DNA from: Scyliorhinus canicula
Taxonomy: Eukaryota
Reading direction: 5' to 3'
DNA: 64,000 bases
Assembly (NCBI RefSeq): GCF_902713615.1
Contig: NC_052174.1
Coordinates: 10,782,514 to 10,846,513 of the forward strand
Shown here: positions 14,624-63,490 of the stretch, in pieces
Position numbering within the stretch: the stretch's first letter is position 1
How the letters are laid out: every line of letters begins with the position of its first letter
Translations under genes and position numbers: made by a program
The notes under the pieces: model-generated
Told to the model about the DNA's origin: nothing
Seen by the model: only the letters and a program-made list of their open reading frames with translations
The model's database searches: none

Positions 14624-15238
14624 TCAGCCATCCCAGTATGTCGCCCCTTTCTCAAGCCCCATTTCATTGATACAGAATTCCCGCATCTGTGGGGACAGTG
14701 ATAGATTTACAGACTGTCTTGTGATGGAGGCAGGCTTCGTAGCTGAGCAAGGAAGACACTGGTTTAGACGAGCAGCATGGTCGGCGCAGGCTTGGAGGGC
14801 CGCAGGGCCTGTCCTGTGCTGTACCTTTCTTTGTTCTTTGTTGACACTTTTCACGGCTGATGAACCACCCCCAGACATTGCGAACATGAAAATGTGGTTC
14901 CCCATGGGATCTCTGTAGGGAGCTGTGCCCAAACTCACAAAAAGTTGGTTCCCCTTTCGATCTGCTCTCCAGACGATATCTCGCTTCAGTAAAATATCCA
15001 GGTTACTCTCCAGCAGTTTAATCATGGATCCTTTCTGTATGATACTCCCACCCGGCAGCAACGTGTCGAATATGGTTCTGTTCAGGAATATCGACCGTAC
15101 GTCCGCTGGCTGGAGAGGAATCAGTTCGTAACATTCATCCTCACTTTTCTTCATATTACTGATCGCCGTGCTTGTCAAAGTGGGGACATTAATTGATGGA
15201 AATCGTAGAGAACTCCACAGCTATAGATGAAATGTATC
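14624..15238 (-). pseudogene. NAT16: Orphan NAT16/HISAT-like terminal exon, disabled
   Basis: Peptide LLPGGSIIQ..LESNLDILLKRDIVWRAD..VSLGTAPY..EFCINEMGLE resembles the NAT16 C-terminal domain. tacag acceptor precedes 15238; in-frame TAG at 15223-15221; 88-nt retro insertion; 16-nt deletion relative to the + copy. Confidence 0.85.
14761..14842 (+). mobile_element. Severely 5'-truncated CR1/HE1 3' tail inside the NAT16-like pseudoexon
   Basis: gagggccgcagggcctgtcctgtgctgtac plus (ttctttg)n tail; TSD GACACT at 14755-14760 and 14843-14848. Confidence 0.85.
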
Positions 15239-15883
15239 CTGTACTAATTGCATGTTATTGGGGGTGGGCACTAATTAGGGATCCACTTTTGATTCTGGAA
15301 ATAGAAACAGTTTGAAATGTAATTGGTTGGTGAAAATGTGTACCTCTGTAAATAAACACTTCTAAAAGGGTGTAAATATGGGCTCCAGTTGTATCTTTCA
15401 CCACATGGCTTCCTGGAGTAGAACATCAAGAGAAGTACTGATGGTGGGATGAGAAACAAAAATTAAATATTGATGAAGTGTTGACTGAAAATGATGCTTT
15501 AAGAATCTCTCGCTGTCTCCTTCCTGTAAAATTTTAATTTCTGATAGTTTTTTGTGTCACAGAAATAGTTTACCATGTTACCGTGGCCCAGGCCAATTCA
15601 GTATGCGAAATCGGGGGGTTCCCAAAATAGAATCCAGCATCCGCGGGGGTCCTCGAAGGATTTTCAGAGAGTTTGTGAAACTGGCGGCCCCCACGTGACC
15701 AGTAAACGCCGGGTTCAAACACACAAAACTTTAAAAGTATTAGAGAAATCAAATGGGTCAATCAGAGAAAGGCCTCTCAGAACACCGGATGCTGATAGGC
15801 TGACAAATCAACCAATAAGGCACTTATTCCATCTCACTGTTTCTCGGCAGTATAGCTCGTCGCCAACAGCGAGGCCGAGGTGA

Positions 15884-16215
15884 GGCGGTACGGTAGCAGA
15901 TAGGTTACCACTGTTGCTTCACAGCTCCAGGGTCCCAGGTTCGATTGCTGGCTTGGGTCACTATCTGTGTGGAGTCTGCACGTTCTCCCCGTGTCTGCGT
16001 GGGTTTCCTTCGTGTGCTGCGGTTTCCTCCCACAGTCCAAAGATGATTGGTTAGGTGATTGATAAATTGCTCTCAATGTCCAAAAAGGATAGGGTTACTG
16101 GGTTACAGGGATAGGGTGGAGTTGTGGGCTTAAGTGTGGTGATCTTTCGAAGGGACGGTGCAGACTCAATGGGCCGAATGGCCTCCTTCAAATGGCACTT
16201 TAAATTCTATGATTA
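15884..16215 (+). mobile_element. HE1-type V-SINE
   Basis: Head/V-domain/tail pattern. Confidence 0.85.
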
Positions 16216-18084
16216 TGACTATGGTTCTATGAATCGGCCAGACGATGGGCGGTGGCAAAGGGAGGCTGCACATGGCCTACGTGTTGTAGTGGCGGGGGTG
16301 GGAAGGCCTTGGAAAAGGATGGGGGGGGGGGGAGGGGGCGGTGGTAGCCAGAGCTCTGGGAAGAAGTGGGTGGGAAGAGGGAGTTTGAGCATCGGAAAGG
16401 AGCAGGGTATGGGATTTGGGCCTCTGAGAGAGGCGAGTGTGCGTGTGTTTGTGTATGAGAGAGAGAGGTATGTGTTTGTGTGTGTTACCATCCCAGTTGA
16501 TGTTAGAACTGGACGGGAAGATCCCAGAATGGAACACTGGCTCAGGAATTTGTCATTTAAAACATTGGGCAGGAGTTTCTGCGCGGGAGGCAGAGATAGC
16601 TCAGATTTACCTGGCGCAGGACCTTCTGATCCCCCTGCTATCAAATGGGGTTTCCAGATGAATAGACCCCTCATTGCTAGGGAACCTGGGCCGGGATAGA
16701 TTATCGGCGAGACCAGAAAGTCCCGCTGGCATGAATGGCTGGAAAATTCCGACCATTTTTCTACTAAAATGTAGAAATTGTCTTGGCTTGAGTTGGTCCC
16801 TGACAGGGTAAGGGAATGAGCGAACTGGACTAGTATCAGCTCACACATCGCTGCAAATCACTACGAGCTCCATTTCACAATTTATCCAGCAGGAATAAAT
16901 CATTTATTAAGTCACCAGAAGAGCAATTTTCACCAGTTGGTGCGGAGTGTTTCCACCTCGAGAGAAAGATCCCGAACTTTGGAAAATCTTTAATCGAATA
17001 ACCCCCCCAGAAACAAGATTTACATACCAAGCTGCAGAGAAAAAAAGTTGGTTTGCAGGTGCAGCAGGAAATTAAGAAGGCAAGTAGAATTTGAGGGATG
17101 AAGTTTTAAAACAGGGAGGTCATGTTGCAGCTGTATAGGGTGCTGGTGAGGTCGCAACTGGAGTACTGTGTACAGTCCTGGCTGCCGTACTCGAGTAAGG
17201 ACGTACTGACACTGGAGGGTGTGCAGAGGAGATTCACTAGGTTGATTGCAGAGTTGAGAGGATTGGCTGATGAGGAGAGACCTGAAATTGAAAGCTAATT
17301 CCAGTAATGGTGGCCATGAGGCTATTATCGACTGTCATAAAAATCCATTTGGTTCACTAATTTATTTTGGGTAAGGAAATCTGCCACCCTGACATGGTCT
17401 GGCCTACATGTCAGTGCAGACCCACAGCATCACGGTTCAATGTTAACCTCCCTCTTAAATGATCAACCAAGTCGCTCACATATACCAAAGTGCCACAGAG
17501 ATGCGGAAGTGACTGCAGCGGCTCCTCCCTACTTTCTCAACGGCAATTAGGAATGGAATGTTGATGCTGGACTTGCTAGTGATGCCCACATCCCCTGAAA
17601 GAATGAAACAAAATAATTGGAGGCAGTCAGAATGACCAAGGGGGATATGCTATGTGGGTCGGACAGTGGCACAATGGTTAGCACTGCTGCCTCTCAGCGT
17701 CAGGGACCCGGGTTCAATTCCGACCTTGGATGACTGTCTGTATGTAGGTTAGGGGGATTGGCTGTGCTAAAATTGGTTCTTGGGTGTCCAAAGATGTGTA
17801 GGTTGGGTGGGGCAACAGGGATAGGGTGGAGGCCTTGGTAGGGAGCTCTTTCAGAGGGCCGGTGCAGACTTGATGGGCCGAATAGACTCCTTCTGCACTG
17901 CAGATGGGCTATATGCTTCTCTGATCTCGCCTGTTCCTGCCCCGCAACAAGTGAGATCGGAGAACGTGGCGTCCCAGCCAAACGTCCATTCACATCCAAT
18001 GGGACCGAAGAATCTCACTCGAGCGAGGTCGGAGAATCCCTGCCAAGGAACGCCTCAACCTGCCAGCTGGCTTTTCCAGATTAG

Positions 18085-18716
18085 AAACGGCCAAGTCTCC
18101 AGCAAGGGGCAGGCAAGTTGGTGGAGTCCAAAGTAGGGATGGTACATACCACGTCGTCAACTCCTTCCATGGCCCCTGATGATTTAACTTGAGAAGGTTT
18201 AGGTCCGAACACCACCGACTCGGCAAGTAGTGTACTGGTAGCTGAGATTGGGCCTAGCCGCCCCTTTGCGGGAATGACAAATTCTCTCCTTCTCAAATGA
18301 TCAACATGTATTATAGCTTGACGGCCATGTCGGTCTATGACATAGGATACTGGCCTAGTCACTGCAATGACTCTCCTGGGTAACCATTCTGGTCCTCCAT
18401 CAAAGTTCCGTACACTTACTAAATCTTCTGTTTGAAATGAACTGCCTCTCTTGGCTGTATCGCGGTGGCCTATTTGTGAGGCCTCCCTCCTCCCGACAAA
18501 TTTGTGAAAATGTGGTCAAATCTGGTCCTGAGGCACCTCTCCATTAACAACTCAGTTGGGGTGACCCCTGTGGTGGTGTGCGGGGTTGAATTGTATAAAG
18601 CAGAAGTGCGTGATTGGCTTGTTTCTTCATTGACGCTTTGAGAGTTTGGACAGCTCATTCGGCCAGCCCGTTTGGCGTGGGTTGGTTGGTCCTTATATGC
18701 TGGATCCCATTGGACT
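18085..18716 (-). mobile_element. Gypsy integrase C-terminal remnant
   Basis: YNSTPHTTTGVTPTELLMERCLRTRFD and RPVSYVI...HVDHLR (GPY/F-like region). Confidence 0.8.
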
Positions 18717-19935
18717 TATCAGAGTTGAAAAGTGCGGTTGATATTCATGTTACTATTTGGTGACCTATAGACTACGCCTATCAGGGAGTTTTTCACCTTA
18801 CTATTCCTAATTTCCACCCAAATGTATTCAACCTGATCCTCCATAGCACTGATGCCATCCCTCACTATTGCCCGGATGTCATCCTTAAATAACAGAGCTA
18901 CCCCACCTCCCTTACCATCCACTCTGTCCTTCCATAGTTTGATACCCTTGGATATTTAACTCCCAGTTGTGACCATCCTTTAACCATGTTTCAGTAATGG
19001 CCACTAAATCATAGTCATTCACGATGATTTGCGCCATCAACTCATTTACCTTATTCCGAATACAGCATTCAGGTGAAGTACACTTATGTTGCCTTTTATA
19101 CCTCTGTTTTGAATCTTAACACCTTGATCAGTAACCTCTCCTAAGTTATTTTTCCTCTTAACTTTTCTCCTAATTTTCCTTGTCGTTGAACCCATATCTT
19201 CATGTAACAGCCTGTCACGTCGCTGTCCATTTATGTTTTTACTTTCCGTTTTATTCCTTTTAGTATTACTGGGCCTATTCACTGAGCTCCCCTCAGTCCC
19301 TGTTCCTTGTATTGTCGCTCTTTTTAATTTTTGACTTCTCTGCCTTACAGTTTCGCCCTTACTGGCTTTTGTTTCTGTCCCTGTTTTACTACCTTCCGAC
19401 TTCCTGCATTGGTTCCCATCCCCCTGCCACATTAGTTTAAACCTTCCCCAACCTCTCTAGCAAATAGCCCCCCAGGACATCAGTTCCAGTCCTGCCCAGG
19501 TGTAACCCGTCCAGTTTGTACAGGTCCCACCAGCCCCAGAACTGGTCCCAATGCCCCAGGAATCTGAAACCCTCCCCCTGACCCCATCCCTTCAGCCATG
19601 TATTCATCCTAAATATCCAGTCATTTCTACTCTGACTAGCACATGGCACCGGTAGTAATCCTGAGATCACTACCTTCAAGGTCCGATTTCTTAATTTCCT
19701 TCCTAGCTCCCTGTATTCTGCTTTTAGGATGACATCCTTTTTTTTACCTGTCGTTTGTACCGATGTGTACCACGACCACTAGCTGTTCACCATCCCCCTC
19801 CAGAATGTCCTGTACCCGCTCCGAAACATCCTTGACCCTAGCACCAGGGAGGCAACATACCATCCTGGAGTCTTGTTTGTGACCTGTCTATTCCCCTCAC
19901 AATTGAATCCCCTATAACTTTCATTCCCAGTCCCT
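18717..19935 (-). mobile_element. CR1 5' portion (ORF1 esterase domain and ORF2 APE endonuclease start)
   Basis: IGDSIVRG and DGLHL (SGNH esterase) motifs; GGGVALLFK..IWVEIR..GVVYRSP. Confidence 0.88.
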
Positions 19936-19939
19936 GATT

Positions 19940-20666
19940 TCTCTTCAAGTTCCATCGATAAATGTTCCCACTCTGATAAGTGAGGTGATCAGTAACATGA
20001 AGAAACGTGGGGATGAATATTACGAACCGATTCCTCTCCAGCCAGGCCATGTGCAATCGATATTCCTGAACCGACCCGTGATCGACACGTTGCTGTCGGG
20101 AGAATCATTCTGAATGGAGCCATGTTCAAACCGCTGGAGAGTAACCTGGATATTTTACTGAAGCGAGATATCGTCTGGAGAGCAGATCGAGAGGGGAACA
20201 CACGGGCTGTGAGTTTGGGCACAGCTCCCTACAGAGATCCCATGGGGAACCGTGTTTTTGTGATCGACATGTTTGGAGAAGATTTATTAGCTGTGTAAAG
20301 TGTCTTCCTCTCTCAGCTGCAAAGCCTGCCTCCTTCACAAGACAATGTAATCTGTCTCCTGTCTGTAGGAGCTGGTTTAGCACACTGGGCTAAATGGCTG
20401 GCTTTGAAAGCAGACCAAGGCAGGCCAGCAGCATGGTTCAATTCCTGTACCAGGCGCTGGAATGTGGCGACTAGGGGATTTTTACAGTAACGTTATTTGA
20501 AGCCTACTTGTGACAATAAGCGATTCTCGTTCATTCAAAACCATCACTGTCCCCACAGATGTGTGAATTCTGTATCAATGAAATGGGGCTTGAGAAAGGA
20601 GAGACATACTTGAAGGATCGCTACATCGCAGAGGGGGAAATATCTATAATTATGGCTAAATTATAA
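19940..20666 (+). pseudogene. NAT16: Second orphan NAT16/HISAT-like terminal exon, disabled
   Basis: Clear homolog of 14624-15238 in opposite orientation; ends YIAEGEI...*. The 5' end is cut by a CR1; there is a frameshift near 20097, TAA at 20296-20298 and a SINE insertion at 20368-20536. Confidence 0.88.
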
Positions 20667-20683
20667 TCAGACCAAGCACAGAA

Positions 20684-21025
20684 GGGCAGCACGGTAGCAT
20701 GATGGTTAGCATAAATGCGTCACAGCTCCAGGGTCCCAGGTTCGATTCCCGGCTGGGTCACTGTCTGTGTGGAGTCTGCACGTCCTCCCCCTGTGTGCGT
20801 GGGTTTCCTCCGGGTGCTCCGGTTTCCTCCCACAGTCCAAAGATGTGCGGGTTAGGTGGATTGGCCATGATAAATTGCCCGTAGTGTCCTAATAAAAGTA
20901 AGGTTAAGGGGGGGCTATTGGGTTACGGGTATAGGGTGGATATGTGGGTTTGAGTAGGGTGATCATGGCTCGGCACAACATTGAGGGCCGAAGGGCCTGT
21001 TCTGTGCTGTACTGTTCTATGTTCT
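20684..21025 (+). mobile_element. HE1-type V-SINE (young)
   Basis: Near-identical to 27073-27408(-) and 61648-61985. Confidence 0.9.
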
Positions 21026-22149
21026 AGAACCTGAATGATTTTCCCCCTCCCCCCGCATGCTCGAGACAATGGGGCCCCCTCCTCTAATTCTACTCTGCAA
21101 TCTCAGAGCTCTGCGACCATCTTACTCCAATCAGTCATTCTGACCATGTGATTGTAGGGCGGGACGGTGGGGCAGTGGTTAGCAGTGCTGCCTCTCGGCG
21201 CCAAGGGCCCGGGTGAAGTGGAGGTTTAGCGATGCTACCTCTTACCAGCCTCCCCGGACAGGCGCCGGAATGTGGCGACTAGGGGCTTTTCACAGTAACT
21301 TCATTGAAGCCTACTCGTGACAATAAGCGATTTTCATTTCATAAAAGTCAATAGTTAGCATGCCACTCGACTTCTATTGTTGCAAGTAGGCTTCAAAGGA
21401 AGTTACTGTGAAAAACACCTAGTCGCCACATCCGGCGCCTGTTCGGGGAGGCTGGTACGGGAAGTTACTTTATTAAGGATTGAGATGAATTACACGACTG
21501 AGTAGTCATTATTAACCATTAAACATGTATTTTTAGGACATAGCAGTAATAAATAATCAAATGTGATGTAGGATAGCTAACTTGACCAAAAGGACATTAC
21601 TTCTGACAACCTGTCTTTGTGAAACAATTCAGGGCGCTGGTTCTGATCTGTTTCTCACAGTCAGCACAGGCTGCTAGGATTGTACATAACTGTCAGAATG
21701 AGGATTAATCGTGGGTTGCTTGCGATTCTATTGGGTGTAGTTTAAACATTGCTTGCAATTCTATTGGGTGACGTTGAAACACTGCTTGCAATTCTACTGG
21801 ATAAGTTTTAAAGTAGCAGCTTCAGGGATTGGATTGCATCCAACTGGGGTGGGCTATTGATTTTTGAACGTTGTATAAGTACTGTGTTCTGGTCTTTGTA
21901 CGACAGAACAGGTCTTGGCAGATATCCAGTCTGTTCTCCGTGTACATGTAACAAGCATGATTAAATAGCCATCTTCTCCAGGTTGTCATTGTATTTTTTC
22001 CTCTCTGTACTGAGTTGAGCCACAGGGAATAACCCCACGTGGAAACTGACTCAATACACAGGTCTTGAAACCGCTCCTACATCTCTGGGTCACTGTCCGT
22101 GTGCAGTTTGCACATTCTCCCCATGTCTGTGGGGCTGTCACCCCCACAT

Positions 22150-26940: not shown

Positions 26941-27812
26941 TGGCCATTCGGTCCATCAGGTCTGCACCGACCCTTTGAATGAGCACTCTATCCATGTCCA
27001 CTCCCTTCTATCTCTGTAACCCCATAACATAAATGGCACCACCCTGGACACCTAGGGGCAACTTGGCACATTTAGAACATAGAACAGTACAGCACAGAAC
27101 AGGCCCTTCGGCCCTCAATTTTGTGCCGAGCCATGATCACCCTACTCAAACCCACGTATCCACCCTATACCCGTAACCCAACAACCCCCCCCTCAACCTT
27201 ACTTGCACTACAGGCAATTTAGCATGGCCAATCCACCTAACCCGCACATCTTTGGACTGTGGGAGGAAACCGGAGAACCCGGAGGAAACCCACGCACACA
27301 GGGGGAGGACGTGCAGACTCCACACAGACAGTGACCCAGCCGGGAATCGAACCTGGGACCCTGGAGCTGTGAAGCATTTATGCTAACCACCATGCTACCC
27401 TGCTGCCCCTGAGACAATGGAAACCGCTCTGATTGTTTCAAGCTAAGGGATAGAGCTGAAATAGAACATAGAACAGTACAGCACAGAACAGGCCCTTCGG
27501 CCCTCGATGTTGTGCCTTGCAATGATCACCCTACTCAAACCCACATATCTACCCTATACCCGTAACCCAACAACCCCCCCCTTAACCTTACTTTTTTTAG
27601 GACACTACGGGCAATTTAGCATGGCCAATCCACCTAACCTGCATATCTTTGGACTATGGGAGGAAACCGGAGCACTCGGAGGAAACCCACGCAGACACGG
27701 GGAGATCGTGCAAACTCCACACACACACACACACACACAGTGACCCAAGGTCGGATTCGAAGCCAGGTCCCTGGCGCTGTTGGGCAGCGGTGCTAACCAC
27801 TGTGCCACCGTA
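26940..27812 (-). mobile_element. Cluster of three HE1-type SINEs (one partial)
   Basis: Copies at 26940-27065, 27073-27408 and 27462-27812; the last has an internal (CA)n. Confidence 0.88.
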
Positions 27813-28040
27813 CAGGTTAGTAAAGAGTGATGTTTAAGATGGGAAGTAAATGAGCAATGGGAGGGTCTCATAGAGAGATCGTTCAGGTACACACGAGGCC
27901 CGTTCCCACAATGGGGGCTTCGGGGGGAAGGTTGCTGTTTCACCGTCACAATCCCAGTGCAGATTGGCAATCTTACTCCCACACTCTAATCGCCGACTAC
28001 CTCATATTTCCAATGAGTGAAACTTGAAGCAGGAACTTTG

Positions 28041-28080
28041 TGACTCAGAGGCTAGAGTGCGACCAATCAAACCACAGCTG
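28041..28080 (+). promoter_or_regulatory. Candidate promoter of copy A (AP-1 TGACTCA, CCAAT, AACCACA, E-box CAGCTG)
   Basis: Motif cluster about 300 bp upstream of the predicted ATG; all motifs are retained in copy B. Confidence 0.45.
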
Positions 28081-28383
28081 ACACTGTGCCTGAAGGCTAC
28101 CAACCCGACAAATTAGTTCAATCCCTCCCCACACATAGCCACATGCAAATGTCACCCATAAAGTTGCAAATAGGACAGCTTTCGGATATGTGAAGGCAGT
28201 CAGGCAGTTTCTGTTCACCTCCATGTTGAAGGGTCTGCTGTGGCACGTCTCGATTCTGTCTCCTACTTTGACGGAGGAATTCCCGCCGTGTGTGAGGGAA
28301 AATCCCAACATCCAACTCTCTTCCACCAGTTGGGTTGTTCTGATCAGTATCTGTAACACAGGCAGAACCAGGACTCCAGAAAT

Positions 28384-28412
28384 ATGGGTCTGTCTCTCTC
28401 GACTTGTAACAG
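28384..28412 (+). CDS. NAT16-like copy A, predicted first coding exon (MGLSLSTCN-R)
   Basis: aatATGG Kozak context, AG|gtaac donor, phase 2. Conserved in copy B with only a synonymous CTG/CTA change. Confidence 0.6.
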
Positions 28413-29699
28413 GTAACAATAATAATAATTGCTTATTGTCACAAGTAGGCTTCAATGAAGTTACTGTGAAAAGCCCCTAGTCGCCACAATCCGGCACCTG
28501 TTCGGGGAGGCTGGTACGGGAATTGAACCTGCGCTGCTGGCTTTGTTCTGTGTTACAAGCCAGCTGTTTAGCCCCGCTGTGCTAAAACAGCCCCTTAACC
28601 AGTTGTTCTGCCTGAACTGTTTCTATCAGTCCCTCTGCTAACTTTATAAACTCATCGTGTGTCAATGATTGAGATATTTAATGAACTCAGTCTCACAACA
28701 GATGATCTGTGGATTAAAACTTTCATTTTTACTGTGTAAATGAAGGAATCCTGAATTTTGCAAGTATAATTATTTGTACTGAAATGTTCATACCTGTGCA
28801 ATCATTTTTTACTTTAAACTTTAATTTTAATGACTGTCCATAACTATGTTGTGAATGATGAATTCTTGTTTTCTTTGTATCCTCACCACCATCTGGCACT
28901 TGACACGATGATGACGGCCGTCCATCATTCTGTTTGTCTCTTTGCTATCCTTTATCTATTTATCTCTCTCTCTCTCTCTATCGACTGTCTATCTCTGTCT
29001 CTCTATCTATCTATTAAACTCCCAGGAAGAGGAGGTGTGTGTTTGTCCGCAGTAACTGACTCTTGTACGATTGGTTTGAGACCCGCTTGTTTTTTCCGTG
29101 ACTTAAATGATTCGATGTGAAAGAGCAGCTGCTCCCTGAAGCATCTGAGTCCCGGGTGGAGGGGGAGGGGGCGGGGGAAGGTTAGGTAGGGACAGAGCAG
29201 CAACTCTCTAAACTCCCTCATCCTGACATTTCTCACCACTCGGAAGCTGTGTAAAGGCCAGCCCAAAATCAAATTATATCCAACAATCAAACTGCTCAAT
29301 AATTCCCCTTCGGCGGCTAATTCATGGTTTGTTCCGTAGTCACCGCCGACACCAACATGGCCGCCAGCTCTTTGCTGCTGTCAATATGACCATTAAAAGG
29401 GAGTCGGGGCCTCTCCCCCCTGACCTGGGGGTCCTGCTGCCCCCATGTTACACTGAACGACCACTCAGGGTTAAAATTAATTAACACCTGGTAAGTGGCA
29501 GACAGAATGTGAAAAACAGAGAGGTGTGGACCCAGGAAAAGGTCTCTACATTCAAAACCAGTTTAATCACATTTCACTACAGTTGCAACCCATGCTTTGC
29601 ATAAAAGATATTTGAAATTCAGGTTATTCTGCCTGGATGTTTACCCCACCCCTGAGTCAGAAGGGCCTCTCCTGAAACCTGAGCATATAATCCAAGCTC

Positions 29700-29885
29700 T
29701 GACCCTCCTGTGCTACACTGAGAGAGTGCAGCACGGTCAGAGACACTATTTGAGGGTGTGATGTTAACGGGAGTCCCGTTCGCCCTCTCAGGTGGATGTA
29801 AGTGTCCCTCGGTCAATATTTAAAGAGTCGATCCGTTCTCCTGGTGCCCTGAGAAAAACTTGTTACTCAACAACCTCACTGGAGA
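29700..29885 (+). mobile_element. Deu-domain SINE remnant shared by both duplication units (paralog 47075-47240)
   Basis: gagtgcagcac..gtcagag...gccctctcaggtggatgtaa core. Confidence 0.6.
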
Positions 29886-29952
29886 AATATGTTTCCATTT
29901 AATTTGGCTTCTCCTGTTCTGTCATCCCATTCCCACACCCACCTGAATCCAG

Positions 29953-30046
29953 GGCGATGAGGTCTTCTGCGATCCACAGTTACCTGAGAGCACCAGGCAG
30001 GCGACCGATGGGGAGGCCCGGAGTGAGGAGCTATATGACCAGACAG
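29953..30046 (+). CDS. NAT16-like copy A, predicted exon 2 (AMRSSAIHSYLRAPGRRPMGRPGVRSYMTRQ)
   Basis: Pyrimidine-rich tract ending tccag; CAG|gtgggt donor; 94 nt, phase 2 to 0. Joins exon 1 to exon 3 in frame in both copies. Confidence 0.55.
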
Positions 30047-47616: not shown

Positions 47617-49632
47617 TAATGCATTTAGTGTTGGCGAGTCCACTACTGTTGCAGGCAGGGCATTCCACGCCCTTACTACTCTCTAAGTAAAGAACCTACG
47701 TCTGACATCTGTCCTATATCTATCTCCCCTCAATTTAAAACTATGCCCTCTCATGCTAGCCATCACCATCTGAGGAAAAAGGCTCTCACTGTCCACCCTA
47801 TCTAATCCTCTGATCATCTTGTACGCCTCAATTAAGTCACCTCTTAACCTTCTTCTCTCTAACGAAAACAGCCTCAAGTCCCTCAGCCTTCCCTCATAAG
47901 ATCTTCCCTCCATACCAGGCAACATTCTGGTAAATCTCCTCTGCACCCTTTCCAATGCTTCCACATCCTTCCTATAATGCGGCGACCAGAATTGCATGCA
48001 ATACTCCAAATGCGGCCGCACCAGTGTTTTGTACAGCTGCAACATGACCGCATGACTCCGAAACTCAATCCCTCTACTAATAAAAGCTAACACATCGTAC
48101 GCCTTCTTAACAACCCTCTCAACCTGGGTGGCAACTTTCAGGGATCTATGCACATGGACACCGAGATCTCTCTGCTCATCCACACTACCAAGAATCTTCC
48201 CATTAGCCCAGTACTCTGTCTTCGTGTTATTCCTTCCAAAATGAATCACCTCACACTTTTCTGCATTAAACTCCATTTGCCACCTCTCAGCCCAGCTCTG
48301 CAGCTTATCTATGTCCCTCTGTAACTTGTAACATCCTTCCGCACTGTCCACAACTTCACCGACTTTAGTGTCATCTGCAAATTTACTCACCCATCCTTCT
48401 ACGCCCTCCTCCAGGTCATTTATAAAAATGACAAACAGTAGTGGCCCCAAAACAGATCCTTGTGGCACACCACTAGTAACTGGACTCCAGTCTGAACATT
48501 TCCCATCAACCACCACCCTTTGCCTTCTTCCAGCTAGCCAATTTCTGATCCAAACTGCTAAATCACCCTGAATCCCATGCCTCTGTATTTTCTTGCAATA
48601 GCCTACCGTGGGGAACCTTATCAAATGCTTTACTGAAATCCATATACACCATCTCAACTGCTTAAACCTCATCCACCTGTTTGGTCACCTTCTCAAAGGA
48701 CTCAATAAGGCTTGTGAGGCACGACCTACCCTTCACATAACCGTGTTGACTATCTCTAATCAAATTATTCCTTTCCAGATGATTATACATCCTGGACGGA
48801 ATTCTCCCGTGCGGAATCGGGAAGGCTGCCGTGAACTCGGCCGAGTTTCACGACAGCCTCGGAGGCCGCTCCTCGCACCCTATTCACCCCCCCCCCCCCC
48901 CAGGGGGCTAGGAGCGCCGCTGGGCCTTGACACTTGCATCAAGGCGGCACGCCGAGAATGACGCGATGGGGGCGCCTAAGTGACGTCAGCCGCACATGCG
49001 CAGGTTGGCCGGCTCCAACCCGTGCATGCGCGGCTGACGTCACGACGGCTCGAACCCGCACATGCGCGTTTGCAGTCTTCCCCTCCGCTGCCCCGCAAGA
49101 TGTGGTGGCTTGATCTTGCGGGGCGGCGGAGGGGAAAGAGTGCGTCGCTTTGAGACGCCGGCCCGACGATCGGTGGGCACCGATCACGGGCCAGTCCCCT
49201 CCTGAGCACGGCCGTGCTGCTCACTCCCCTCTCCGCCCCCCATAAGCTTCAAACGAGCATTTGGCGCCACGTTCATGCCGGCAGCGACCAGGTGTGGTTG
49301 GCGCCGTCGTGAACCGGTCGGGAACGTCAGGCCGCTCGGCCCATCCGGGCCGTAGAATCGCCGGCCTGCCGTGAAAAACGGCGAGCGGCAATTCATCCGA
49401 GCGGGGGATGAGAGAATCGTTGAGGGTGCCAGTGGGGCGTGTCTTGAGTCGCCCGGCCCTCCCGCGGTTCTCCCACCCGGCGTGGGGAGCGGAGAATTCC
49501 GCCCCCTATCTCTTATAAACCTTTCCAAGACTTTGCCCACAACAGAAGTAAGGCTCACTGGTCTATAGTTACCGGGATTGTCTCTACTTCCCTTCTTGAA
49601 CAAGGGGACAACATTTGCTATCCTCCAGTCTT
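47617..49632 (-). mobile_element. Young CR1 RT region (329-aa open ORF at 47683-48672)
   Basis: GVPQGSVLGP, FADDTK, RPHLEYCMQFW and GNYRPVSLTS motifs. Confidence 0.95.
48794..49504. mobile_element. GC-rich MITE (Harbinger/PIF-like) inserted in CR1
   Basis: TIR GG(A/G)CGGAATTCTCC; 3-bp TSD CCT at 48791-48793 and 49505-49507. Related ends near 3958-4220, 14190-14250 and 43370-43390. Confidence 0.8.
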
Positions 49633-49639
49633 CTTAGAC

Positions 49640-52400
49640 TTACCTGCAAGTGATCTGCCTGCCACCAGCATTCAGCCATCCTGCAAAATGGACAGCATCC
49701 GCCCGACACCGCCTGCTCCGCATCACCGGTAACCTCGGGGCCAACTGGAAGATCTTCAAACATCACTTCCAGCTTTACCTTGAAGCAACAGACCTGGAAG
49801 CTGCTCCAGATGCCAGGAAGATCGCTCTCTTCCTCTCCATGGCCGGGAACCACGCCATCCACATCTTCAACTCTCTCATCTTGACTGATGGTGAAGACAA
49901 ATCAAAACTCAAGACGGTCCTCCTCAAATTTGACAGTCACTGCGACATCGAGGTGAATGAATGTTTAGAGCGCTATGTCTTCCAACAGCGTTTGAACGGT
50001 AAGGATGAACCCTTCCAGTCCTTTCTCACCCACCGCCGCATCCTTGCGCAGTCCTGTAATTACGGGTCCACCTCCGACTCCATGATCGTTTTCGGCGTTC
50101 AGTTGGCCCCCCCTACGCCAGCAGCTCCTCAACGGTCACCCGCTTGGACACTGGCATAGCGGTCTCCTGGATCGCCCAGAGGACATGTGAGCGCATCAGG
50201 CATGGTATACAGACCCTTGCATTGACCGACACACAAGCCAGGTTGGTCACCTACACGGGAGAACCATTGGACATTGCAGGAACTACGATGACCTCTGTTA
50301 TTTATGGACGCCAGGTGGGGCGTTTCCCACTTACCGTGGTGCACAGCCACAGGCCCAGCCTGTTGGGTGGGGACTGGTTGCGCCATTTGCAGCTGCAGTG
50401 GAAGCACATCCTCCAAACAGGTTCTGGAGGGTTGACGGACGTACTAGGACGGTTCCCAGATGTATTCCAGCCCGGTTTGGGGAAAATAGCCCGTATCAGG
50501 GGCTGGTTTAGCTCACTCGGCTAAATCGCTAGCTTTTAAAGCAGACCAAGCAGGCCAGCAGCACGGTTCGATTCCCGTACCAGCCTCCCCGGACAGGCAA
50601 CGGAATGTGGCGACTAGGGGCTTTTCACAGTAACTTCATATGAAGCCTACTCGTGACAATAAGCGATTTTCGTTTTCATTTCATTTCATTTCCAAGTCGA
50701 CCCAGGAGCCACTCCGCTCTATTTCCGGGTGTGCCTGGTGCCTTACGGTTTGCTCGAAGGTAGAAGGGAAGCTCACTCGTTTGGAGTCCTTGGGTATTAT
50801 CAGGCCTGTCTGTTTCGCTGACTGGGCAGCACCAATTGTACCTGTAATGAAGCCACAGTCGTTTGTGCGGTGACTATAAACTTGCAGTGAATACGGCTTC
50901 CCGGCTTGACCGATATCCAATGCCTCACATAGAGGATCTCAACGCAAAGTTTGCAGGCTGAATCTCATTCACAAAATTAGATATGAGTCACGCCTACCAA
51001 CATTGGAGCTGGACCCTGTCTACTGGCCATATGTAACGATTAATACATAGTGGGGCCTGTATGAATATACACGGTTGTCCTTTGGCGTATCCTCTGCCTG
51101 CGCTATTCTTCAATGCGTCATGGAGGGCATCTTGAGAGGTTTACCGCGTGTCGCTGTCTACTTAGACAATGTTTTGATTACAGGGACGTCGGAGCAGGAA
51201 AATTGGAGGCTGTCCTTAGACGTTTTTCAGAGGCTGGAGTCTGTTTATGTCGTACAAAGTGCGTCTTTCATGTGATGGAAGTAGTCTATCTGGTTTATCG
51301 TGTGGACCGCGAAGGTTTGCACCCCATCGCAAAGAAGGTGCGCACAATTCAACAGGCCCCTGCCCCGACTGACACTTTGCATCTTCGTTCTTTTCTCGGC
51401 TTCATAAACTATTACAGGAAGTTCCTCCCCAGACTGGCAACTACGCTGGCCCCGTTGCACCTTCTACAAAAGAAGAATCACACCTGGGTTTGGGGTCAGC
51501 CGCAAGAAACCGCTTTCCGGCGGGTAAAACAACAATTGTCGTTGTCTGGGTTACTAACCCACTACGATCCTGGAAAGCCTTTGCTCTTCACGTGTGATGC
51601 ATCCCCGTTATGGTATTAGGGCCGTCCTATCCCACAAGATGGAGAACGGGCCAAGCGTATTGACTGCAGCAGAAAAGAAGTACGTGCAGATCGAGAAGGA
51701 CGGCCTGGCGGTGGTCTTTGAAGTGTACCAGTATGTGCATGGCCACCACTTCACTATCGTGACTGATCATAAGCCTCTGCTGGGACTTTTCCGAGAGGGT
51801 AAGCCAATACCGCCCATTGCTTCAGCACGGATCCAGTCCTGGGCTTTGTTGCTCGCTGCCTACGCGTATTCTCTGGAGCCTAAACCAGGGATCCAGATAG
51901 GGAATGTCGATGCACTGAGCCGATTGCCTTTGTCGACCGGCCCATTGTTGACCCCCACGACCGGTGAGGTGGTTGCAACCCTACATTTGATGGAATCCTT
52001 GCCTGTCACGGCATTACAGATACGTGAGTGGACCCAGACGGAGCCAGTCCTGTCAAAGCTTCGGCACATAGTCCTGTATGGTGAGCAGCATAGACAGCTC
52101 CCAGACGAGTTGCGGGCATTTTCCTCCAAGCTGTCAGAATTTAGCGTGGAAGACGGTATCCTCTTGTGGGGGACGCGTGTCATTGTCCCAGAAAAAGGAC
52201 AGGAGCTGATACTGAGAGACTTGCACAATGGGCATCCAGGTCTGACCAAAATGAAAATGTTGGCCCGGAGTTATGTCTGGTGGCCAGGCCTCGACACCGA
52301 CATTGAGAAGGTGGCCGAAAACTGCTCCATTTGCCAGGAGCATCAGAAGCTTCCGCCGGCTGCGCCCCTACATCACTGGGAATGGCCAGGGCGGCCTTGG
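49640..52400 (+). mobile_element. Degenerate Gypsy LTR retrotransposon (gag, protease, RT, RNase H, integrase zinc finger)
   Basis: NWKIFKHHFQLYL gag, LDTG, WAAPIVPV, YLDNV, CDASPYG, TDHKPL, LHNGHPG..YVWWPG..CSIC. Confidence 0.93.
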
Positions 52401-52404
52401 GTAA

Positions 52405-55400
52405 CGTTGTCCGGAACGGCATCCAGTGCTGGAAGAAACTGCACGATCCGCTCAGGGCGGCTAGGGTGAGTAGGTTTCCCCACCCTGCCCACATGCCAGC
52501 ACCCATGCCAGCCACAATGTCTGGGTGCCCTGGCCACTGAGGTTATCATTTATCCAACCCATTGGTTGCATGCGATGGAACATCTACCAATGTTATTGTT
52601 TGTGTTTGTCCCCCGCCCCACAGCCAGTGCCAGAGCCGGTCCCCCCCGCCCCACAGCCAGTGCCAGAGCCGGTCCCCCCCCGCCCCCCAGCCAATGCCAG
52701 AGCCGGTCCCCCCCCGCCCCCCAGCCAGTGCCAGAGCCGGTCCCCCCCCGCCCCACAGCCAGTGCCAGAGCCGGTCCCCCCCGCCCCCCAGCCAGTGCCA
52801 GAGCCGGTCCCCCCCCGCCCCCCAGCCAGTGCCAGAGCCGGTCCCCCCCTGCCCCACAGCCAGTGCCAGAGCCGGTCCCCCCCCGCCCCACAGCCAGTGC
52901 CAGAGCCTCTGCCCCCCGCCCCCCAGCCAGTGCCAGAGCCGGTGCCCCCCCCAGACGGCCGAGCAATGATGGGGAGAGCAGCGCGGACACCAGCCCTCTG
53001 CCCGTGACTCAGGAGACCTCGGAGCTCGGGTCGGAGGTTGACACTGACTTCCCGTCACAGCTGTCTCCTACACCCTCCACACATCGCATCCGGTACAGCA
53101 GGTGGAGGTAGGAGCAGCTGAGGGGCCGGACGGGGGGGGGGGGGGAGCGGAGGGCAGCCCGGCCCCAGGAAGCAGCTGCTGCCCAGATGGGTCCTGAGCT
53201 CCTGGAACATCCAGTCCCAGCCACAGTGGAGATGCAGCCAGAGACCCAGGGACTAGACATCGGGATGCCAGCACCTGCAGGGGCAGGTGGAAGAGTCCAT
53301 CTGCGTGCAGGAGCAGGGGGTGGTGCCGGCCATGTGTACCACCCAGGCCAACACCGCACGGGTGGCATCCGCGGTGGAGGCACTGGACGACGGTGCCAGT
53401 TTTGGGTCAGAGTGTGGAAGGCCTGGGGCATGCTGTGCAGGCGGGGGGCTGAGGCCCAGAACAGGGTTGCCCTCTCACATCGCAGCGGTAGCGTGGCCCA
53501 GTCACAGAAGGCCATGGCTGGCGGCCTCGGCGGTATTACCCAGGCGCTGGCCAGCGTGGCGCAAACACTGGGCAGGGTGGCCCAGTCCCAGAGAGACGTG
53601 GCCCAGTCCCAGAGAGAGGTGTCACATACCCAAAGAGACATGGCCCACTTTCCTGTTCCTGGTGCATCTGGTGGGCAGCGGGCAGAACAGGGCGGCACCA
53701 TGCCACCCAGGACTCCGGAGCAGCAGCCGGGCCCATCCAGGCCGAGTCGCCCCAGGAGACGTGTGCCAAAGGGGACCCAGGTCACAGGGCAGGAATCACA
53801 GCAGGCCAGCTCCACTCCTGCTGTACGGTCTGGGGAACCACCTCGGCGGAGTGTTAGGGCGTAAGGCCAGAAAATTAGACACCAGTTAAGCTGGCATGGA
53901 TGCAGGGCACTGTTTAGTTATAGGGACCAGGAAACACCTGTTAACATCACTGAAACCTGCCTCGGTGCTCTGCTTGATGGGTGTAGGGGTGGGACAGTCA
54001 GTGCTGCCCAGTGGGAGCTGGGGGTGGGGGACGAGTGCAGGCTCCGTGGATGGACCGTGCTCCCCACCCTCCCTTCCTCCCCGGCCGTCCCCAGCACCCC
54101 CGCCCCAGGGATTCGACGGGACCGTGTGATGGGCTGGCCAGCTCGCATCCAGGGATCACCCAGGTGGAAGGTGCTACCGTGGGCATGAGTCAGACATTGT
54201 CTAACGATGTGGAACACGGAGCTCATCACAGAGCGGGCTGTCATCATCCTCCATCCCATGGAGCAAACCTGCTGTCACTGCCAACCCAGTGCCCCCAGCT
54301 CACCGTGTCGCAGGTATGTATCGTGGAGGGGGTGTATATGCGGGTGATTTGGTGGTGTGGGAGGTGAGGGGGTGTGGGTCTGGGATGGTGTTGTCCGTGC
54401 CCCTGGCCAGTAACTCCCCTTCCCCCCCCCTTAGTCGGCGAAATATGAGGCGACGAGGACATCCCATGCGCGCTGTCCCTGACGATGGCGTTGTGCGGCC
54501 TCCCGGGCCCCATGGCCCGCTTATTGTCCCCCTCACCCGCATCCTCCTCATCTGAAGGTGGTCTGCTGTGCGATGTTGTGGAGGACGCAGCAGGCCACCG
54601 CGATGCAGGTGACCCTCCTGGCCTCGTACTGGAGGGCCCCTCCAGAGCGGTCTCGGCATCTGAAGCGCATCTTCAGGACTCTGAAGCAGCGCTCGACCAC
54701 ATCCCTGGTCGCTGTATGGGCATCATTGTAGCGGAAGTCGCCGTGGGTCTGTGGCGTCACAGCCATAACCGTAACGGGTAACCCCTGTCGCCCAGCAGCC
54801 AACCCCGCAGCTGGAGGGGGTGCCCCTCAAACATGTCGGGGATCACCGAGTGAGCCAGTATGAAGGAGTTGTGCATGCTTCCGGGTATCGGGCACAGACG
54901 GGCATGATGCGCTGGGCGATCATGGAGTGGTACCCCTTCCTGCTGGTGTATGGTGGCCTATTATCCGCCGGTGGCCGTAGGGCGACACACGTCCTGTCGA
55001 TCATGCCCTGGACCCGGGGCATCCCGCCGACGGCAGCAAACCCCACTGCCCAGGCATCCTGGTGGGCACGGTCAGCATGGAAATGGATGTACCGTTCCGC
55101 CTGGGAATATAGGGTTTCCGTGAAGGCACGGATACACCTGTGCGCCGATGCCTGCGATATCCTGGCCAGGCCCTCACTCGGCGACTGGAACGACTCCGTG
55201 GCATAGGTCCTCAAACGACATGCGGTTGGGGTACACGCGGGGCCTCATGAGGTGCACCCTTGGCACCTCTTCTTCCTCCTGGGCCTGTTGGGTGGCCACC
55301 CTCCAGCCTGTGCGGCCGCCACCTGCCCCTCTGCAGCCCGTTCCTGTGCTGCAGCCACCTCCTCCTCCCTGAACGGCCTTCAGTCATATTGCCATAGAGT

Positions 55401-56284: not shown

Positions 56285-56446
56285 TACTCAGAGTCAGACC
56301 TGGATTGTTGCCTGGCTACAGAAAAGGATTTTGGACATGTACAATCCCTTTACAACGATGAGACAGATTACATGTCGAGCGTCTACCATTCCTGGCTGCG
56401 AGAGAGAAACCATGTGGTCTTTTTGGCCAAACTCCATGGTCAAGTG
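56285..56446 (+). CDS. NAT16: NAT16/HISAT-like copy B, GNAT exon (YSESDLDCCLATEKDF...DYMSSVYHSWLRERNHVVFLAKLHGQV)
   Basis: 162 nt open; same boundaries as copy A; gtgagt donor. Confidence 0.9.
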
Positions 56447-59988: not shown

Positions 59989-60009
59989 AGTGTTACACAC
60001 ACTCTGACA

Positions 60010-61647: not shown

Positions 61648-61985
61648 GGGGAGCACGGTAGCATGGTGGTTAGCATAAATGCTTCACAGCTCCAGGGTCC
61701 CAGGTTCGATTCCCGGCTGGGTCACTGTCTGTGTGGAGTCTGCACGTTCTCCCCGTGTGTGCGTGGGTTTCCTCCGGGTGCTCCGGTTTCCTCCCACAGT
61801 CCAAAGATGTGTGGGTTAGGTGGATTGGCCATGCTAAATTGCCCGTAGTGTCCTAAAAAAAGTAAGGTTAAGGGGGGGTTGTTGGGTTACGGGTATAGAG
61901 TGGATACGTGGGTTTGAGTAGGGTGATCATGGCTCGGCACAACATCGAGGGCCGAAGGGCCTGTTCTGTGCTGTACTGTTCTAAA
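61648..61985 (+). mobile_element. HE1-type V-SINE (young)
   Basis: Full pattern; a shorter variant is at 61294-61505. Confidence 0.9.
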
Positions 61986-62147: not shown

Positions 62148-62700
62148 GGGTCATAGTTTGAGGATAAGGGATTTTAGGATTGAGGTGAGGAGGGATTTTC
62201 ACAGTAACTTCATTGCAGTGTTAATGTAAGCCTACTTGTGACAATAAAGGTCAGTTAAAAAAAAGGTCTTCACCCAGAGAGAGTGGTGAATCTGCAGAAT
62301 TCACTACCACAGAAAGTAGTTGAGGCCAAAACGTTGTGTAATTTCAAGAAGGAATGGTTTAGCTCACTAGGCTAAATCGCTGGCTTTGAAGGCAGACCAA
62401 GGCAGGCCAGCAGCACGGTTCAATTCCCGTACCAGCCTCCCCGAACAGGCGCCGGAATGTGGCGACTAGGGGCTTTTCACAGCAACTTCATTGAAGCCTA
62501 CTCGAGACAATAAGCGATTTTCATTTTTCATTTTCATATAGCTCTTGGGGCTAAAAGGATCAAGGGATATTGGGGGGGGGGGGGGGGAAGGCAAGATCAG
62601 GGTATTGAACTTGATGATCAAGGCCACGATCAGAATGAATGGCGGAGCAGGCTCGAAGGGCCGAATGGCCTCCTCCTGCTCCTATTTTCTATGTATGTTT
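62148..62700 (+). mobile_element. CR1 3' end with nested SINEs
   Basis: ttcacccagagag..gtgaatctg and gggccgaatggcctcctcctgctcct tail. Confidence 0.75.
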
Positions 62701-62774
62701 CAATTCCCATACTGGCTGAGGTTATTCATGAAGGACCACACCGCCTACTCAACCTTGGTCCTCGCCTGAGGTGT

Positions 62775-63157
62775 GTGAGGTGTTGGCTAGTATAGACTTG
62801 AGAGATGAACAGACACTTCCAACACTTATGAAGGTTCAACTCAATTTTATTAACTACTTCTAACTAACTAACACACGATGACTGTGGGTCTAAATGATGC
62901 TAACTTAAACTAGAGACCTGAGCCTTGTCCGAACCAGTTGATTCTCTCAGCACGTGGTATAAGTCTGCTGGGCTGGATGAGTTCCTGTTACACTCAGAGG
63001 CAGCACCCAGAATGAGCGGGAACCGTGGTGCCCTCTGCCTTTATAGTGTGTGTATTCTAACTGGTGATTGGCTGCGGTGTTTATACATGTTGATTGGTCC
63101 CTGTGTGTGTCCATGAGTGTGTGTCTGCACCATGATATACTGGTGTATATTGTGAGA
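62775..63157 (-). mobile_element. Probable solo LTR
   Basis: Interrupts another repeat; TATAAA and AATAAA on the minus strand; ends are degenerate. Confidence 0.45.
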
Positions 63158-63277
63158 GTGCGGTGACCCTCAGGTTAAATCACCACCAGTCCTCTCTCCC
63201 CCTTAAAGAGGAAAGCAGCCTATGGTCATCTGTGATAATGGTGACTTTAACTTTTTTACTTACCTCTGTGTTTCCAG

Positions 63278-63490
63278 ATTGGTCTGGTTTCTTCTCACAT
63301 TGTGGATGACGGACAGACAGTCCTGATGCAATGTGTAAAAGTAGCTGCTTCAGAGAGAGGCAAAGGAGTTGGACGGCTGATGTACAAACACATTGTTGAG
63401 CTTGCAACAACAAGGTTCCCGCAGCTGAAGAAGCAAAGTTTTGTCACAGATCACAAGCTCGACAGAGGACTTTGTGTATTAGGCACACAG
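63278..63490 (+). CDS. NAT16: NAT16/HISAT-like copy B, acetyl-CoA-binding exon (IGLVSSHIVDDGQT...SERGKGVG...VLGTQ)
   Basis: tttccag acceptor, CAG|gtac donor; 213 nt open; intact ERGKGVG motif A. The terminal exon is presumably beyond the window. Confidence 0.92.

Follow-up and report, generated by a model that had tools for sequence, protein, structure and literature searches.

The question raised by this locus, a 64,000-nt window of the Scyliorhinus canicula genome, is whether its exons related to NAT16, the histidine N-acetyltransferase (HisAT), belong to ordinary HisAT genes, to genes acting on another substrate, or to pseudogenes. The window contains two exon sets on the same strand, units A and B, together with two inverted copies of a terminal exon, both of them dead. 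We consider it probable that it is part of a birth-and-death array of tandem HisAT/NAT16-like genes, here called D-type, with an altered acceptor pocket from which histidine has most likely been dropped.

Exon organization of the window

A D-type gene comprises five coding exons, with e1 and e2 encoding a short N-terminal peptide, e3 and e4 the acetyl-CoA-binding first GNAT domain, and e5 the whole second GNAT (Hisat_C) domain. Exons were located by tblastn using a full-length Heptranchias relative as query, and their borders were set from splice sites. The first-pass annotation had described two NAT16-like exon sets and two dead terminal exons, which we recovered with four coding exons per set and not two, all open and with AG acceptors and GT donors. 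The features are as follows.

15220–14624, minus strand: dead copy of e5 (NAT16 structure match, E 8.6e-6; Hisat_C positions 4–86 of 124; tblastn match 15211–14633)
19931–20645, plus strand: dead copy of e5, acceptor intact (tblastn matches in three frames; frame views)
27822–30249, plus strand: unit A 5' module, i.e. upstream region, e1, intron 1 and e2 (tblastn, splice sites, module comparison)
28384–28412, plus strand: unit A e1, starting MGLSLSTCN (tblastn, splice sites)
29953–30046, plus strand: unit A e2 (tblastn, splice sites)
36915–37076, plus strand: unit A e3, alpha1–alpha2 region, DETDY segment, three-residue deletion removing Tyr74 (NAT16 structure-sequence match)
40647–40859, plus strand: unit A e4, beta4–alpha3 core, IELLKV for VEGLRV, and WGNGVA for RGKGVA in the acetyl-CoA motif
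43048–43059, plus strand: cryptic final coding exon of XP_038642678, Leu-Ile-Leu-stop (protein ends GKQLIL; gene span ends at 43059; acceptor and codons read)
44467–47602, plus strand: unit B 5' module, i.e. upstream region, e1, intron 1 with gap, and e2 (tblastn, splice sites)
45247–45275, plus strand: unit B e1 (tblastn, splice sites)
46024–46162: assembly gap inside unit B intron 1, at distances of 748 nt from the e1 donor and 1147 nt from the e2 acceptor
47309–47402, plus strand: unit B e2 (tblastn, splice sites)
56285–56446, plus strand: unit B e3, YNDETDY (tblastn; identical to P0057 residues 33–86)
63278–63490, plus strand: unit B e4, MQCVKV, intact RGKGVG cofactor motif (NAT16 structure-sequence match)

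When compared to the human NAT16 crystal-structure sequence (9EMO/9EMD), the translations of unit A e3 and e4 matched with E values of 5.5e-10 and 0.006, that of unit B e4 with 3e-5, and the minus-strand terminal exon with 8.6e-6. Both terminal-exon relics furthermore matched Pfam Hisat_C (PF24066) at 7.9e-15 and 1.9e-9, with scores of 55.3 and 38.0 bits, above the gathering cut-off of 27. The motif changes quoted earlier were all present in these alignments: in place of IYGGLDY stands a segment that is shorter by three residues and ends in DETDY, VEGLRV is replaced by IELLKV (unit A) or MQCVKV (unit B), and QDWQPY by QKGSMI and LNGAMF.

Unit A corresponds to RefSeq protein XP_038642678 (P0001, 152 aa) and unit B to XP_038642680 (P0057), both from a single 16.13-Mb scaffold. 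Unit A is not a complete gene; the entire second GNAT domain is absent from it, and a search between 40860 and 45250 found no e5 remnant. Its branch in the tree is 0.29 long, compared to 0.05–0.1 for other members, and its cofactor motif (WGNGVA) carries R131W and K133N, deviating from the R131-x-x-G134-x-A/G136 pattern with V126 that characterizes acetyl-CoA binding. Because of the missing terminal exon, the long branch and R131W, unit A looks like an old paralog that has lost e5, a truncated copy in decay.

A different role for unit A, which we find quite improbable, would be that its e1–e4 form a variable 5' cassette that is joined, past the unit B exons, to an e5 farther downstream used in common, so that the array would combine a single second domain with a choice of first GNAT domains. 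Its four open exons have canonical splice sites, and the e4 donor (GTACAA) equals that of unit B despite the old divergence; among paralogs, conservation is highest in e5 and lowest in e4, the annotation of the canonical catshark HisAT gene lists two alternative terminal exons, and terminal exons are duplicated in S. torazame. Such a splice would, however, span about 24 kb and leave out four good exons, and unit B carries an e5 of its own about 1.2 kb past e4. No annotated isoform joins exons across units, the sole unit A model ends in the cryptic exon, and the two cofactor-motif substitutions and a branch three- to six-fold longer also speak for a decaying copy rather than a cassette.

Unit B is apparently an intact gene. 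Its e5 lies beyond the window by about 1.2 kb and ends at ~65253 on the window scale, judging from the RefSeq gene span, and PF24066 (Hisat_C) is present in the precomputed annotation of P0057. The RefSeq model begins inside a retrotransposon ORF and not at e1.

The assembly gap is crossed by no reading frame, and its flanks are colinear with unit A intron 1 in the same orientation (28720–28900 with 45797–45979, and 29076–30249 with 46415–47602). This gap, with its low-complexity flanks, invites the explanation that faulty assembly, for instance uncollapsed haplotypes or a mis-join at the gap, produced the two units or the inverted pair of e5 copies, which is hardly credible. Units A and B differ by 16–29% in exons and by about 35% in the introns flanking e3/e4 and carry different transposon insertions, a divergence far above the allelic level. 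The e5 relics are likewise just 82% identical, and the colinearity of the gap flanks also argues against an artefact.

Of the two relics, the one on the minus strand has an insertion of ~85 nt, a frame-shifted middle and a stop ahead of the last beta-strand. It is still open as a 184-aa ORF, and its branch in the e5 tree measures 0.38 (median 0.08). The plus-strand relic is disrupted by a frameshift near 20100, by a stop in frame and, at ~20364–20531, by a SINE-like insertion that is accompanied by a change of frame and matches a dispersed ~170-nt repeat. Together they form an inverted repeat with 81–92% identity and pair in the e5 tree (support 81/87); these inverted upstream copies are probably the remains of a further unit.

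Acceptor pocket, cofactor site and predicted fold

In the 2025 structures of human HisAT, Tyr74 and Trp246 sandwich the imidazole of histidine, Trp246 being the sole second-domain residue contributing to substrate binding and conserved even in an archaeal homolog; the Gly123-Leu124 beta-bulge provides the oxyanion hole and a carboxylate contact, and Tyr79 binds the substrate carboxylate (PMC12219266). The previously flagged motif changes coincide with three of these histidine-binding elements, namely Tyr74, Trp246 and the bulge. Throughout the D-type sequences, among them those of units A and B and the two relics, Tyr74 is deleted (three residues gone) and position 246 is Gly or Ala, leaving no aromatic sandwich. 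In 15/15 non-D sequences, which range from lamprey to human, position 74 is Tyr or Phe and the Gly123-Leu124 pair is present, and Trp occupies 246 in each of the 14 covering that position (human row partial). The bulge is Leu-Leu in unit A and Cys-Val in unit B, and basal D members keep Gly-Leu; the effect of these changes is uncertain, as the contacts are made by the backbone. In unit B, Cys-Val could mean that catalysis was lost rather than specificity changed.

The cofactor site was found to be better conserved. Outside unit A, every D member retains R131, G134 and V126, apart from an Ile for V126 in one Heterodontus copy, and position 136 is mostly Ala or Gly (Leu in two); the RGKGVG of unit B agrees with the acetyl-CoA pattern in full. 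Tyr79 is retained in nearly all D members. Hypervariable columns among catshark paralogs include the pocket positions G123, L124 and D163, so that 3 of the 7 pocket columns fall among the 15 hypervariable of 316 (hypergeometric p = 0.003, in a test chosen post hoc).

An AlphaFold model of the unit B product (P0057:33-344; pLDDT 91.2, pTM 0.88) has the double-GNAT fold with a putative acyl-CoA-binding N-terminal domain, and its best PDB matches in a structure search were 9EMP, 9EN3 and 9EMD, at TM 0.90 (0.90/0.85 against 9EMP). As both the fold and the cofactor site are kept, D-type proteins are probably still acyl-CoA-dependent N-acyltransferases. Their acceptor pocket would have been rebuilt through the deletion of Tyr74 and Gly/Ala at 246, with positions 123, 124 and 163 varying from paralog to paralog, so that histidine is most likely no longer accepted. 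Judged from the lost binding residues, a new acceptor is likely; the substrates are probably other amines, possibly a different one for each paralog.

The first peptide adds a further feature. In both units e1 begins Met-Gly-Leu-Ser-Leu-Ser-Thr-Cys, and MGLSLSTCN fits the permissive N-myristoylation pattern G-{EDRKHPFYW}-x-x-[STAGCN]-{P}, the ATG having A at −3 and G at +4. The MGLSLSTC start is shared with three other S. canicula models and with S. torazame, and Heptranchias has MGISLSTC. D-type proteins may thus be membrane-anchored via N-terminal acylation.

That D-type proteins could be ordinary histidine N-acetyltransferases, with immaterial pocket differences, appears very improbable. 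Their RefSeq name, 'histidine N-acetyltransferase-like', would agree with it but is automatic, and fold, cofactor site and, in nearly all members, Tyr79 are kept. On the other hand, no D member has either of the two residues that stack against the imidazole, Trp246 is conserved down to the archaeal homolog, non-D sequences keep these positions, and the same scaffold carries a canonical copy in which both residues are present. A literature search found no publication on D-type genes.

More serious, if still unlikely, is the view that the whole window is pseudogene debris, with unit B also dead and the Scyliorhinus D array consisting mostly of decaying copies annotated as genes. Besides the truncated unit A and the two dead e5 relics, several features of unit B point this way: it is as far from the e3–e4 consensus as unit A (11/63 columns each), it departs from the D-clade consensus at 4/32 otherwise invariant e3–e4 columns, it carries E122Q and G123C, its introns are rich in LINE, LTR and Harbinger insertions, and its RefSeq N-terminus comes from a retrotransposon. 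Furthermore, the homologue search results, transcript-derived Logan proteins included, contained no transcript match of D type. However, the four in-window exons of unit B show open frames and canonical splice sites, the e5 annotated for it is complete and shares 94% identity with the P0050 e5, R131, G134 and V126 are kept, and the model folds at pLDDT 91. Exon identity between A and B (84% and 71%) is well above that of the flanking introns (63–66%), and the e1–e2 peptide is conserved as far as Heptranchias, which favors unit B as an intact gene.

Comparison with characterized double-GNAT enzymes and NAT8

The unit B model superposes on human HisAT/NAT16 (9EMD, 9EMO, 9EMP, 9EN3; Myllykoski et al. 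2025, PMC12219266) with TM 0.90, an rmsd of 2.5 Å and 30% identity. The exon logic is the same, with e5 encoding the second GNAT domain, and D-type proteins keep Tyr79 and Phe63 as well as, except in unit A, the acetyl-CoA contacts R131, G134 and V126. Apart from the absence of Tyr74 and Trp246 and the variable bulge, they differ from the human enzyme in lacking four residues after position 165 and two ahead of the IDMFG segment, and in a C-terminal tail longer by 5–7 residues. The two-exon N-terminus is new, and human NAT16 is cytosolic.

The next-best structural matches to the unit B model were the N-myristoyltransferases NMT1 and NMT2, also double-GNAT enzymes (TM about 0.55, 10–13% identity). 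Like these, and unlike HisAT, D-type proteins lack the hairpin Trp and have residues past the last strand; the place of HisAT Trp246 is taken in NMT by the C-terminal carboxylate (PMC12219266). The D-type tail is in contrast short and modelled with low confidence (pLDDT about 63), giving no support for its entry into the active site.

The rodent NAT8-family (Cml) tandem arrays encode membrane-bound GNAT acetyltransferases and resemble the D-type array in that a small-molecule N-acetyltransferase has expanded in tandem within one lineage, with membrane association, putative for the D-type, as a further shared trait. They differ in having a single GNAT domain, in belonging to another clade, and in being anchored by a transmembrane segment and not by lipid. 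In sequence, NAT8 ranks among the nearest human relatives of the first HisAT domain (PMC12219266).

Phylogeny and history of the array

Both units were placed in a D clade (support 100/100, stem 0.58) whose members, in this sampling, are exclusively sharks: Heptranchias, Heterodontus, Cetorhinus, Carcharodon and two Scyliorhinus species. This clade stands apart from a canonical elasmobranch clade (100/100) that includes S. canicula P0082, found on the same 16.1-Mb scaffold. Units A and B are consequently no one-to-one NAT16 orthologs, as had been suggested; a grouping of copy B as such an ortholog with histidine specificity had been named as what would refute the original proposal. The canonical HisAT (P0082, 'histidine N-acetyltransferase isoform X2') has orthologs in at least 20 sharks and rays and groups with bony-vertebrate NAT16/HisAT (support 89/63). 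It shares family and domain order with the D-type, lies on the same contig as D-type genes also in S. torazame, Heterodontus, Heptranchias and Carcharodon, and is 33–37% identical to unit B, and it keeps Tyr74, Trp246 and G123-L124.

S. canicula has at least seven D-type gene models, S. torazame at least five and Heterodontus three or four; none were found in rays, though canonical HisAT is present there. Homologue search and trees thus uphold the proposed lineage-restricted, tandemly expanded subfamily with dead members. The premise that NAT16 is normally single-copy did not hold, as NAT16-like paralogs occur in gar and teleosts, and additional copies in coelacanth, lungfish and amphibians. 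A constrained tree with a chondrichthyan-only duplication was not rejected (AU p = 0.345), and the data are compatible with either such a duplication or an older paralog as the origin of the D clade.

Within the window, the 5' modules of units A and B are 86–93% identical, introns included, compared to 63–66% for the introns flanking e3/e4, and dN/dS between the units in e4 is 0.79, a value that weighs against the favored reading. The 5' module (promoter, e1 and e2) has probably been homogenized or re-duplicated in recent times, and the e3–e4 parts are old.

Exon anatomy of units A and B and of the terminal-exon relics

The structural and evolutionary evidence gives good support for reading the window as one section of a tandem array that is restricted to sharks, comprising one apparently intact gene, one truncated and decaying copy, and two relics. 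Translated pieces of the window matched the human NAT16 crystal-structure sequence (E 5.5e-10 to 0.006), and the three motif changes relative to human NAT16 that the first-pass annotation had quoted are visible as described in these alignments. The RefSeq model of the first of two same-strand exon sets (unit A) is P0001 (XP_038642678, "histidine N-acetyltransferase-like", 152 aa, S. canicula), which is 98% identical to the exon-3 translation from the window and whose gene lies on the 16.13-Mb scaffold of GCA_902713615.2. The full-length Heptranchias perlo relative P0002 (360 aa) was used as a tblastn guide, with splice sites read directly, and revealed units of a five-exon design (e1-e5).

Coding exons located by tblastn and splice sites
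28384-28412 (e1), 29953-30046 (e2), 36915-37076 (e3) and 40647-40859 (e4), plus strand, unit A
45247-45275 (e1), 47309-47402 (e2), 56285-56446 (e3) and 63278-63490 (e4), plus strand, unit B

Each of the eight exons has an open frame, the splice acceptors are AG and the donors GT, and e1-e4 amount to 166 codons in each unit. Exons e3 and e4 of unit B are identical to the corresponding part of its RefSeq model, P0057 (XP_038642680, 344 aa), and the gene span of that model places the terminal exon of unit B approximately 1.2 kb beyond the window end. Residues 1-32 of P0057 are encoded by the pol ORF of an LTR retrotransposon lying within intron 2 of unit B (at 51639), and the first exon of the XP_038642680 model looks like a mis-annotation; the conserved e1 (45247) and e2 (47309) are the likelier true start. 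An assembly gap (46024-46162), whose real size may differ from these coordinates, lies within intron 1 of unit B; the gap flanks are colinear with intron 1 of unit A, their order is consistent, and no coding frame spans the gap. Unit A lacks e5: sensitive protein and DNA searches of 40860-45250 gave only noise, and the RefSeq model closes with a cryptic exon encoding Leu-Ile-Leu-stop (43048-43059).

The Hisat_C Pfam threshold, for the second GNAT domain encoded by e5, was passed by both terminal-exon copies in the window. These two relics form an inverted repeat of 81–92% identity, arranged head to head approximately 4.7 kb apart. The plus-strand relic has kept its acceptor; its reading frame shifts near 20100 and changes at a SINE-like insertion (~20364-20531), and there is an in-frame stop. 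The minus-strand relic retains a 184-aa ORF; it contains an ~85-nt insertion, part of it is frame-shifted, and it ends before the last beta-strand. In a tree of e5 sequences the two relics pair (81/87) on long branches of 0.15 and 0.38, compared to a median of 0.08. Searches for e1-e4 remnants upstream of unit A (1-28300) returned only noise.

The window also holds two dispersed repeat families and several transposon fragments. The ~340-nt family accounts for much of the DNA that separates the NAT16-like exons, one copy of the ~170-nt repeat interrupts the plus-strand e5 relic, and the LINE and Harbinger fragments represent independent insertions in units A and B.

Repeats and transposon remnants
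7466-7634, 13359-13532, 20367-20531, 28427-28595, 50498-50674 and 62355-62525, ~170-nt SINE-like dispersed repeat, copies 81–96% identical
484-804, 1526-1866, 12623-12950, 15884-16221, 20678-21026 and 27073-27408, ~340-nt dispersed repeat, first copies (both strands across the family)
27461-27811, 33935-34281, 35467-35812, 39142-39337 and 61648-61983, ~340-nt dispersed repeat, further copies (both strands across the family)
34555-35079, minus strand, LINE endonuclease fragment
47683-48672, minus strand, LINE reverse-transcriptase fragment
51594-52469, plus strand, together with 49650-50159, within intron 2 of unit B, pol remnant of an LTR retrotransposon that includes RNase H and integrase zinc-binding domains
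52610-52951, proline-rich tandem repeat (period ~67 nt) with several open frames, immediately 3' of the integrase of the LTR element
54548-54802, minus strand, Harbinger-type DDE_Tnp_4 transposase fragment

Mosaic ages and phylogenetic placement

The two units do not share a single age along their length. The 5' modules of unit A (27.8-30.25 kb) and unit B (44.5-47.6 kb) are 86–93% identical, introns included, with 96% identity in the e1+e2 coding sequence. Around e3 and e4, the introns share only 63–66% identity, compared to 84% for the e3 and 71% for the e4 exons, and comparing the two units gives dN/dS values of 0.38 for e3 and 0.79 for e4. These exon and intron identities indicate that e3 and e4 are old paralogs held above background, and that the module comprising the promoter, e1 and e2 was recently duplicated or converted. 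Positive selection on e4 had been considered as its 71% identity seemed low against "intron" identities of 83–87%, but that high intron identity is confined to the e1-e2 module and the introns adjoining e3 and e4 are only 63–66% identical; the explanation was therefore rejected in favor of mosaic ages.

In a phylogenetic tree of 51 rows (LG+C20, lamprey root), units A and B nested in the Scyliorhinus part of a divergent HisAT-like clade (the D clade; 100/100 support, long stem of 0.58) containing only shark sequences and distinct from the canonical elasmobranch HisAT clade. The lineage-specific subfamily that had been proposed from the sequence is thus recovered, and unit B groups within it rather than as the ordinary NAT16/HisAT ortholog, the canonical copy of S. 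canicula being P0082. The canonical elasmobranch clade (100/100) encompasses sharks and rays, including P0082, which is encoded on the same scaffold as the array, and adjoins bony-vertebrate NAT16/HisAT (89/63). Forcing the D and canonical clades together cost 1.4 log-likelihood units (AU p = 0.345), and the D clade may have originated either from the canonical gene inside the cartilaginous fishes or as an older paralog. Protein-database searches, covering proteins and not genomes, returned no D-type proteins from rays, chimaeras or orectolobiform sharks. Within the D clade, ortholog pairs are common to S. canicula and S. torazame, with extra duplicates in S. canicula, and the Heterodontus expansion is separate; unit A is the earliest branch of the Scyliorhinus group (branch 0.29).

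Duplicated terminal exons were also seen elsewhere. The canonical S. canicula gene (P0082) has two annotated alternative terminal exons, each giving a 318-aa product, and S. torazame P0068-P0072 comprise tandem terminal-exon copies, some with Cys instead of Trp246 (human HisAT numbering). The locus seems prone to duplicating its terminal exon.

Active site and predicted function of the D-type proteins

In human HisAT, the histidine ring is stacked between Tyr74 and Trp246, its carboxylate contacts Tyr79 and the Gly123 amide in addition to Tyr74, and its amine contacts the carbonyl of Thr160; the oxyanion hole consists of Gly123-Leu124 and the cofactor is bound by Arg131, Gly134 and Ala136 (PMC12219266). 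Trp246 is the sole residue used from the second domain, and even an archaeal homolog has conserved it (PMC12219266). Among the aligned sequences outside the D clade, 15 of 15 carry Tyr or Phe at position 74 together with Gly-Leu at 123-124, and Trp is found at 246 in all 14 covering that position. In all D members, Tyr74 has been removed by a three-residue deletion and position 246 is Gly or Ala. Every D member except unit A retains Arg131, Gly134 and Val126, apart from Ile at position 126 in one Heterodontus copy; the cofactor motif of unit A instead has Trp131 and Asn133. Position 136 is mostly Ala or Gly, with Leu in two members.

Three of the seven pocket columns, Gly123, Leu124 and Asp163, rank among the 15 most variable of the 316 columns when ten Scyliorhinus paralogs are compared (p = 0.003, in a test defined post hoc), and so does Asp162. 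Mean identity between these paralogs is lowest in e4 (74%) and highest in e5 (86%), whereas canonical orthologs display the opposite pattern.

The AlphaFold model of the unit B product (pLDDT 91, pTM 0.88) superposes on human HisAT with a TM score of 0.90, though its six-residue C-terminal tail is poorly modelled (pLDDT ~63). D-type C-termini (e.g. residues 307-312 of P0057) extend 5-7 residues beyond the canonical HisAT end, directly after the last strand. As strands beta6 and beta13 of HisAT are swapped between the two domains (PMC12219266), the first domain of unit A alone is unlikely to fold into an enzyme.

From these features we infer that the D-type proteins are probably still acyl-CoA-dependent and no longer histidine-specific, and that they are possibly acceptor-diversified and possibly lipid-anchored. 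The acceptor pocket would have been opened through the loss of Tyr74 and Trp246 and then diversified between paralogs at positions 123, 124, 162 and 163, and the array could yield varied N-acyl amines or N-acyl amino acids, or its products could acylate peptides. A short tail at the C-terminus might fill the Trp246 space, much as the extended C-terminus of N-myristoyltransferase enters the active site at the place held by Trp246 in HisAT. The full proposal, in which the D-type proteins are shark-specific, lipid-anchored and active N-acyltransferases with an opened pocket diversified in each paralog, varied products and a tail perhaps replacing Trp246, is regarded as unlikely.

Human HisAT/NAT16 was not identified and structurally determined before 2025, in work that does not discuss paralogs (PMC12219266), and literature searches on NAT16/HisAT or N-acetylhistidine in sharks returned nothing relevant. 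The physiological role of HisAT and the cause of its histidine preference are still open questions, on which the shark genes bear as a natural experiment: a canonical copy is found beside expanded relatives that have kept the fold and cofactor site, have lost exactly the two aromatics holding histidine, and vary at other pocket positions. If active, the D-type proteins would reveal how a double-GNAT acceptor site can be retargeted, and possibly shark N-acylated metabolites as yet unknown; if inactive, the array would be a clean example of birth-and-death decay. In either case, the RefSeq name "histidine N-acetyltransferase-like" is automatic and no guide to function.

No transcript-derived protein across the e4-e5 junction was found, and the sole non-RefSeq match was the e5-only protein P0144 (160 aa). 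It is encoded on a 1183-nt JGI metagenome contig, presumably shark host DNA within the metagenome sample, and represents a D-type terminal exon with 83% identity to that of unit B.
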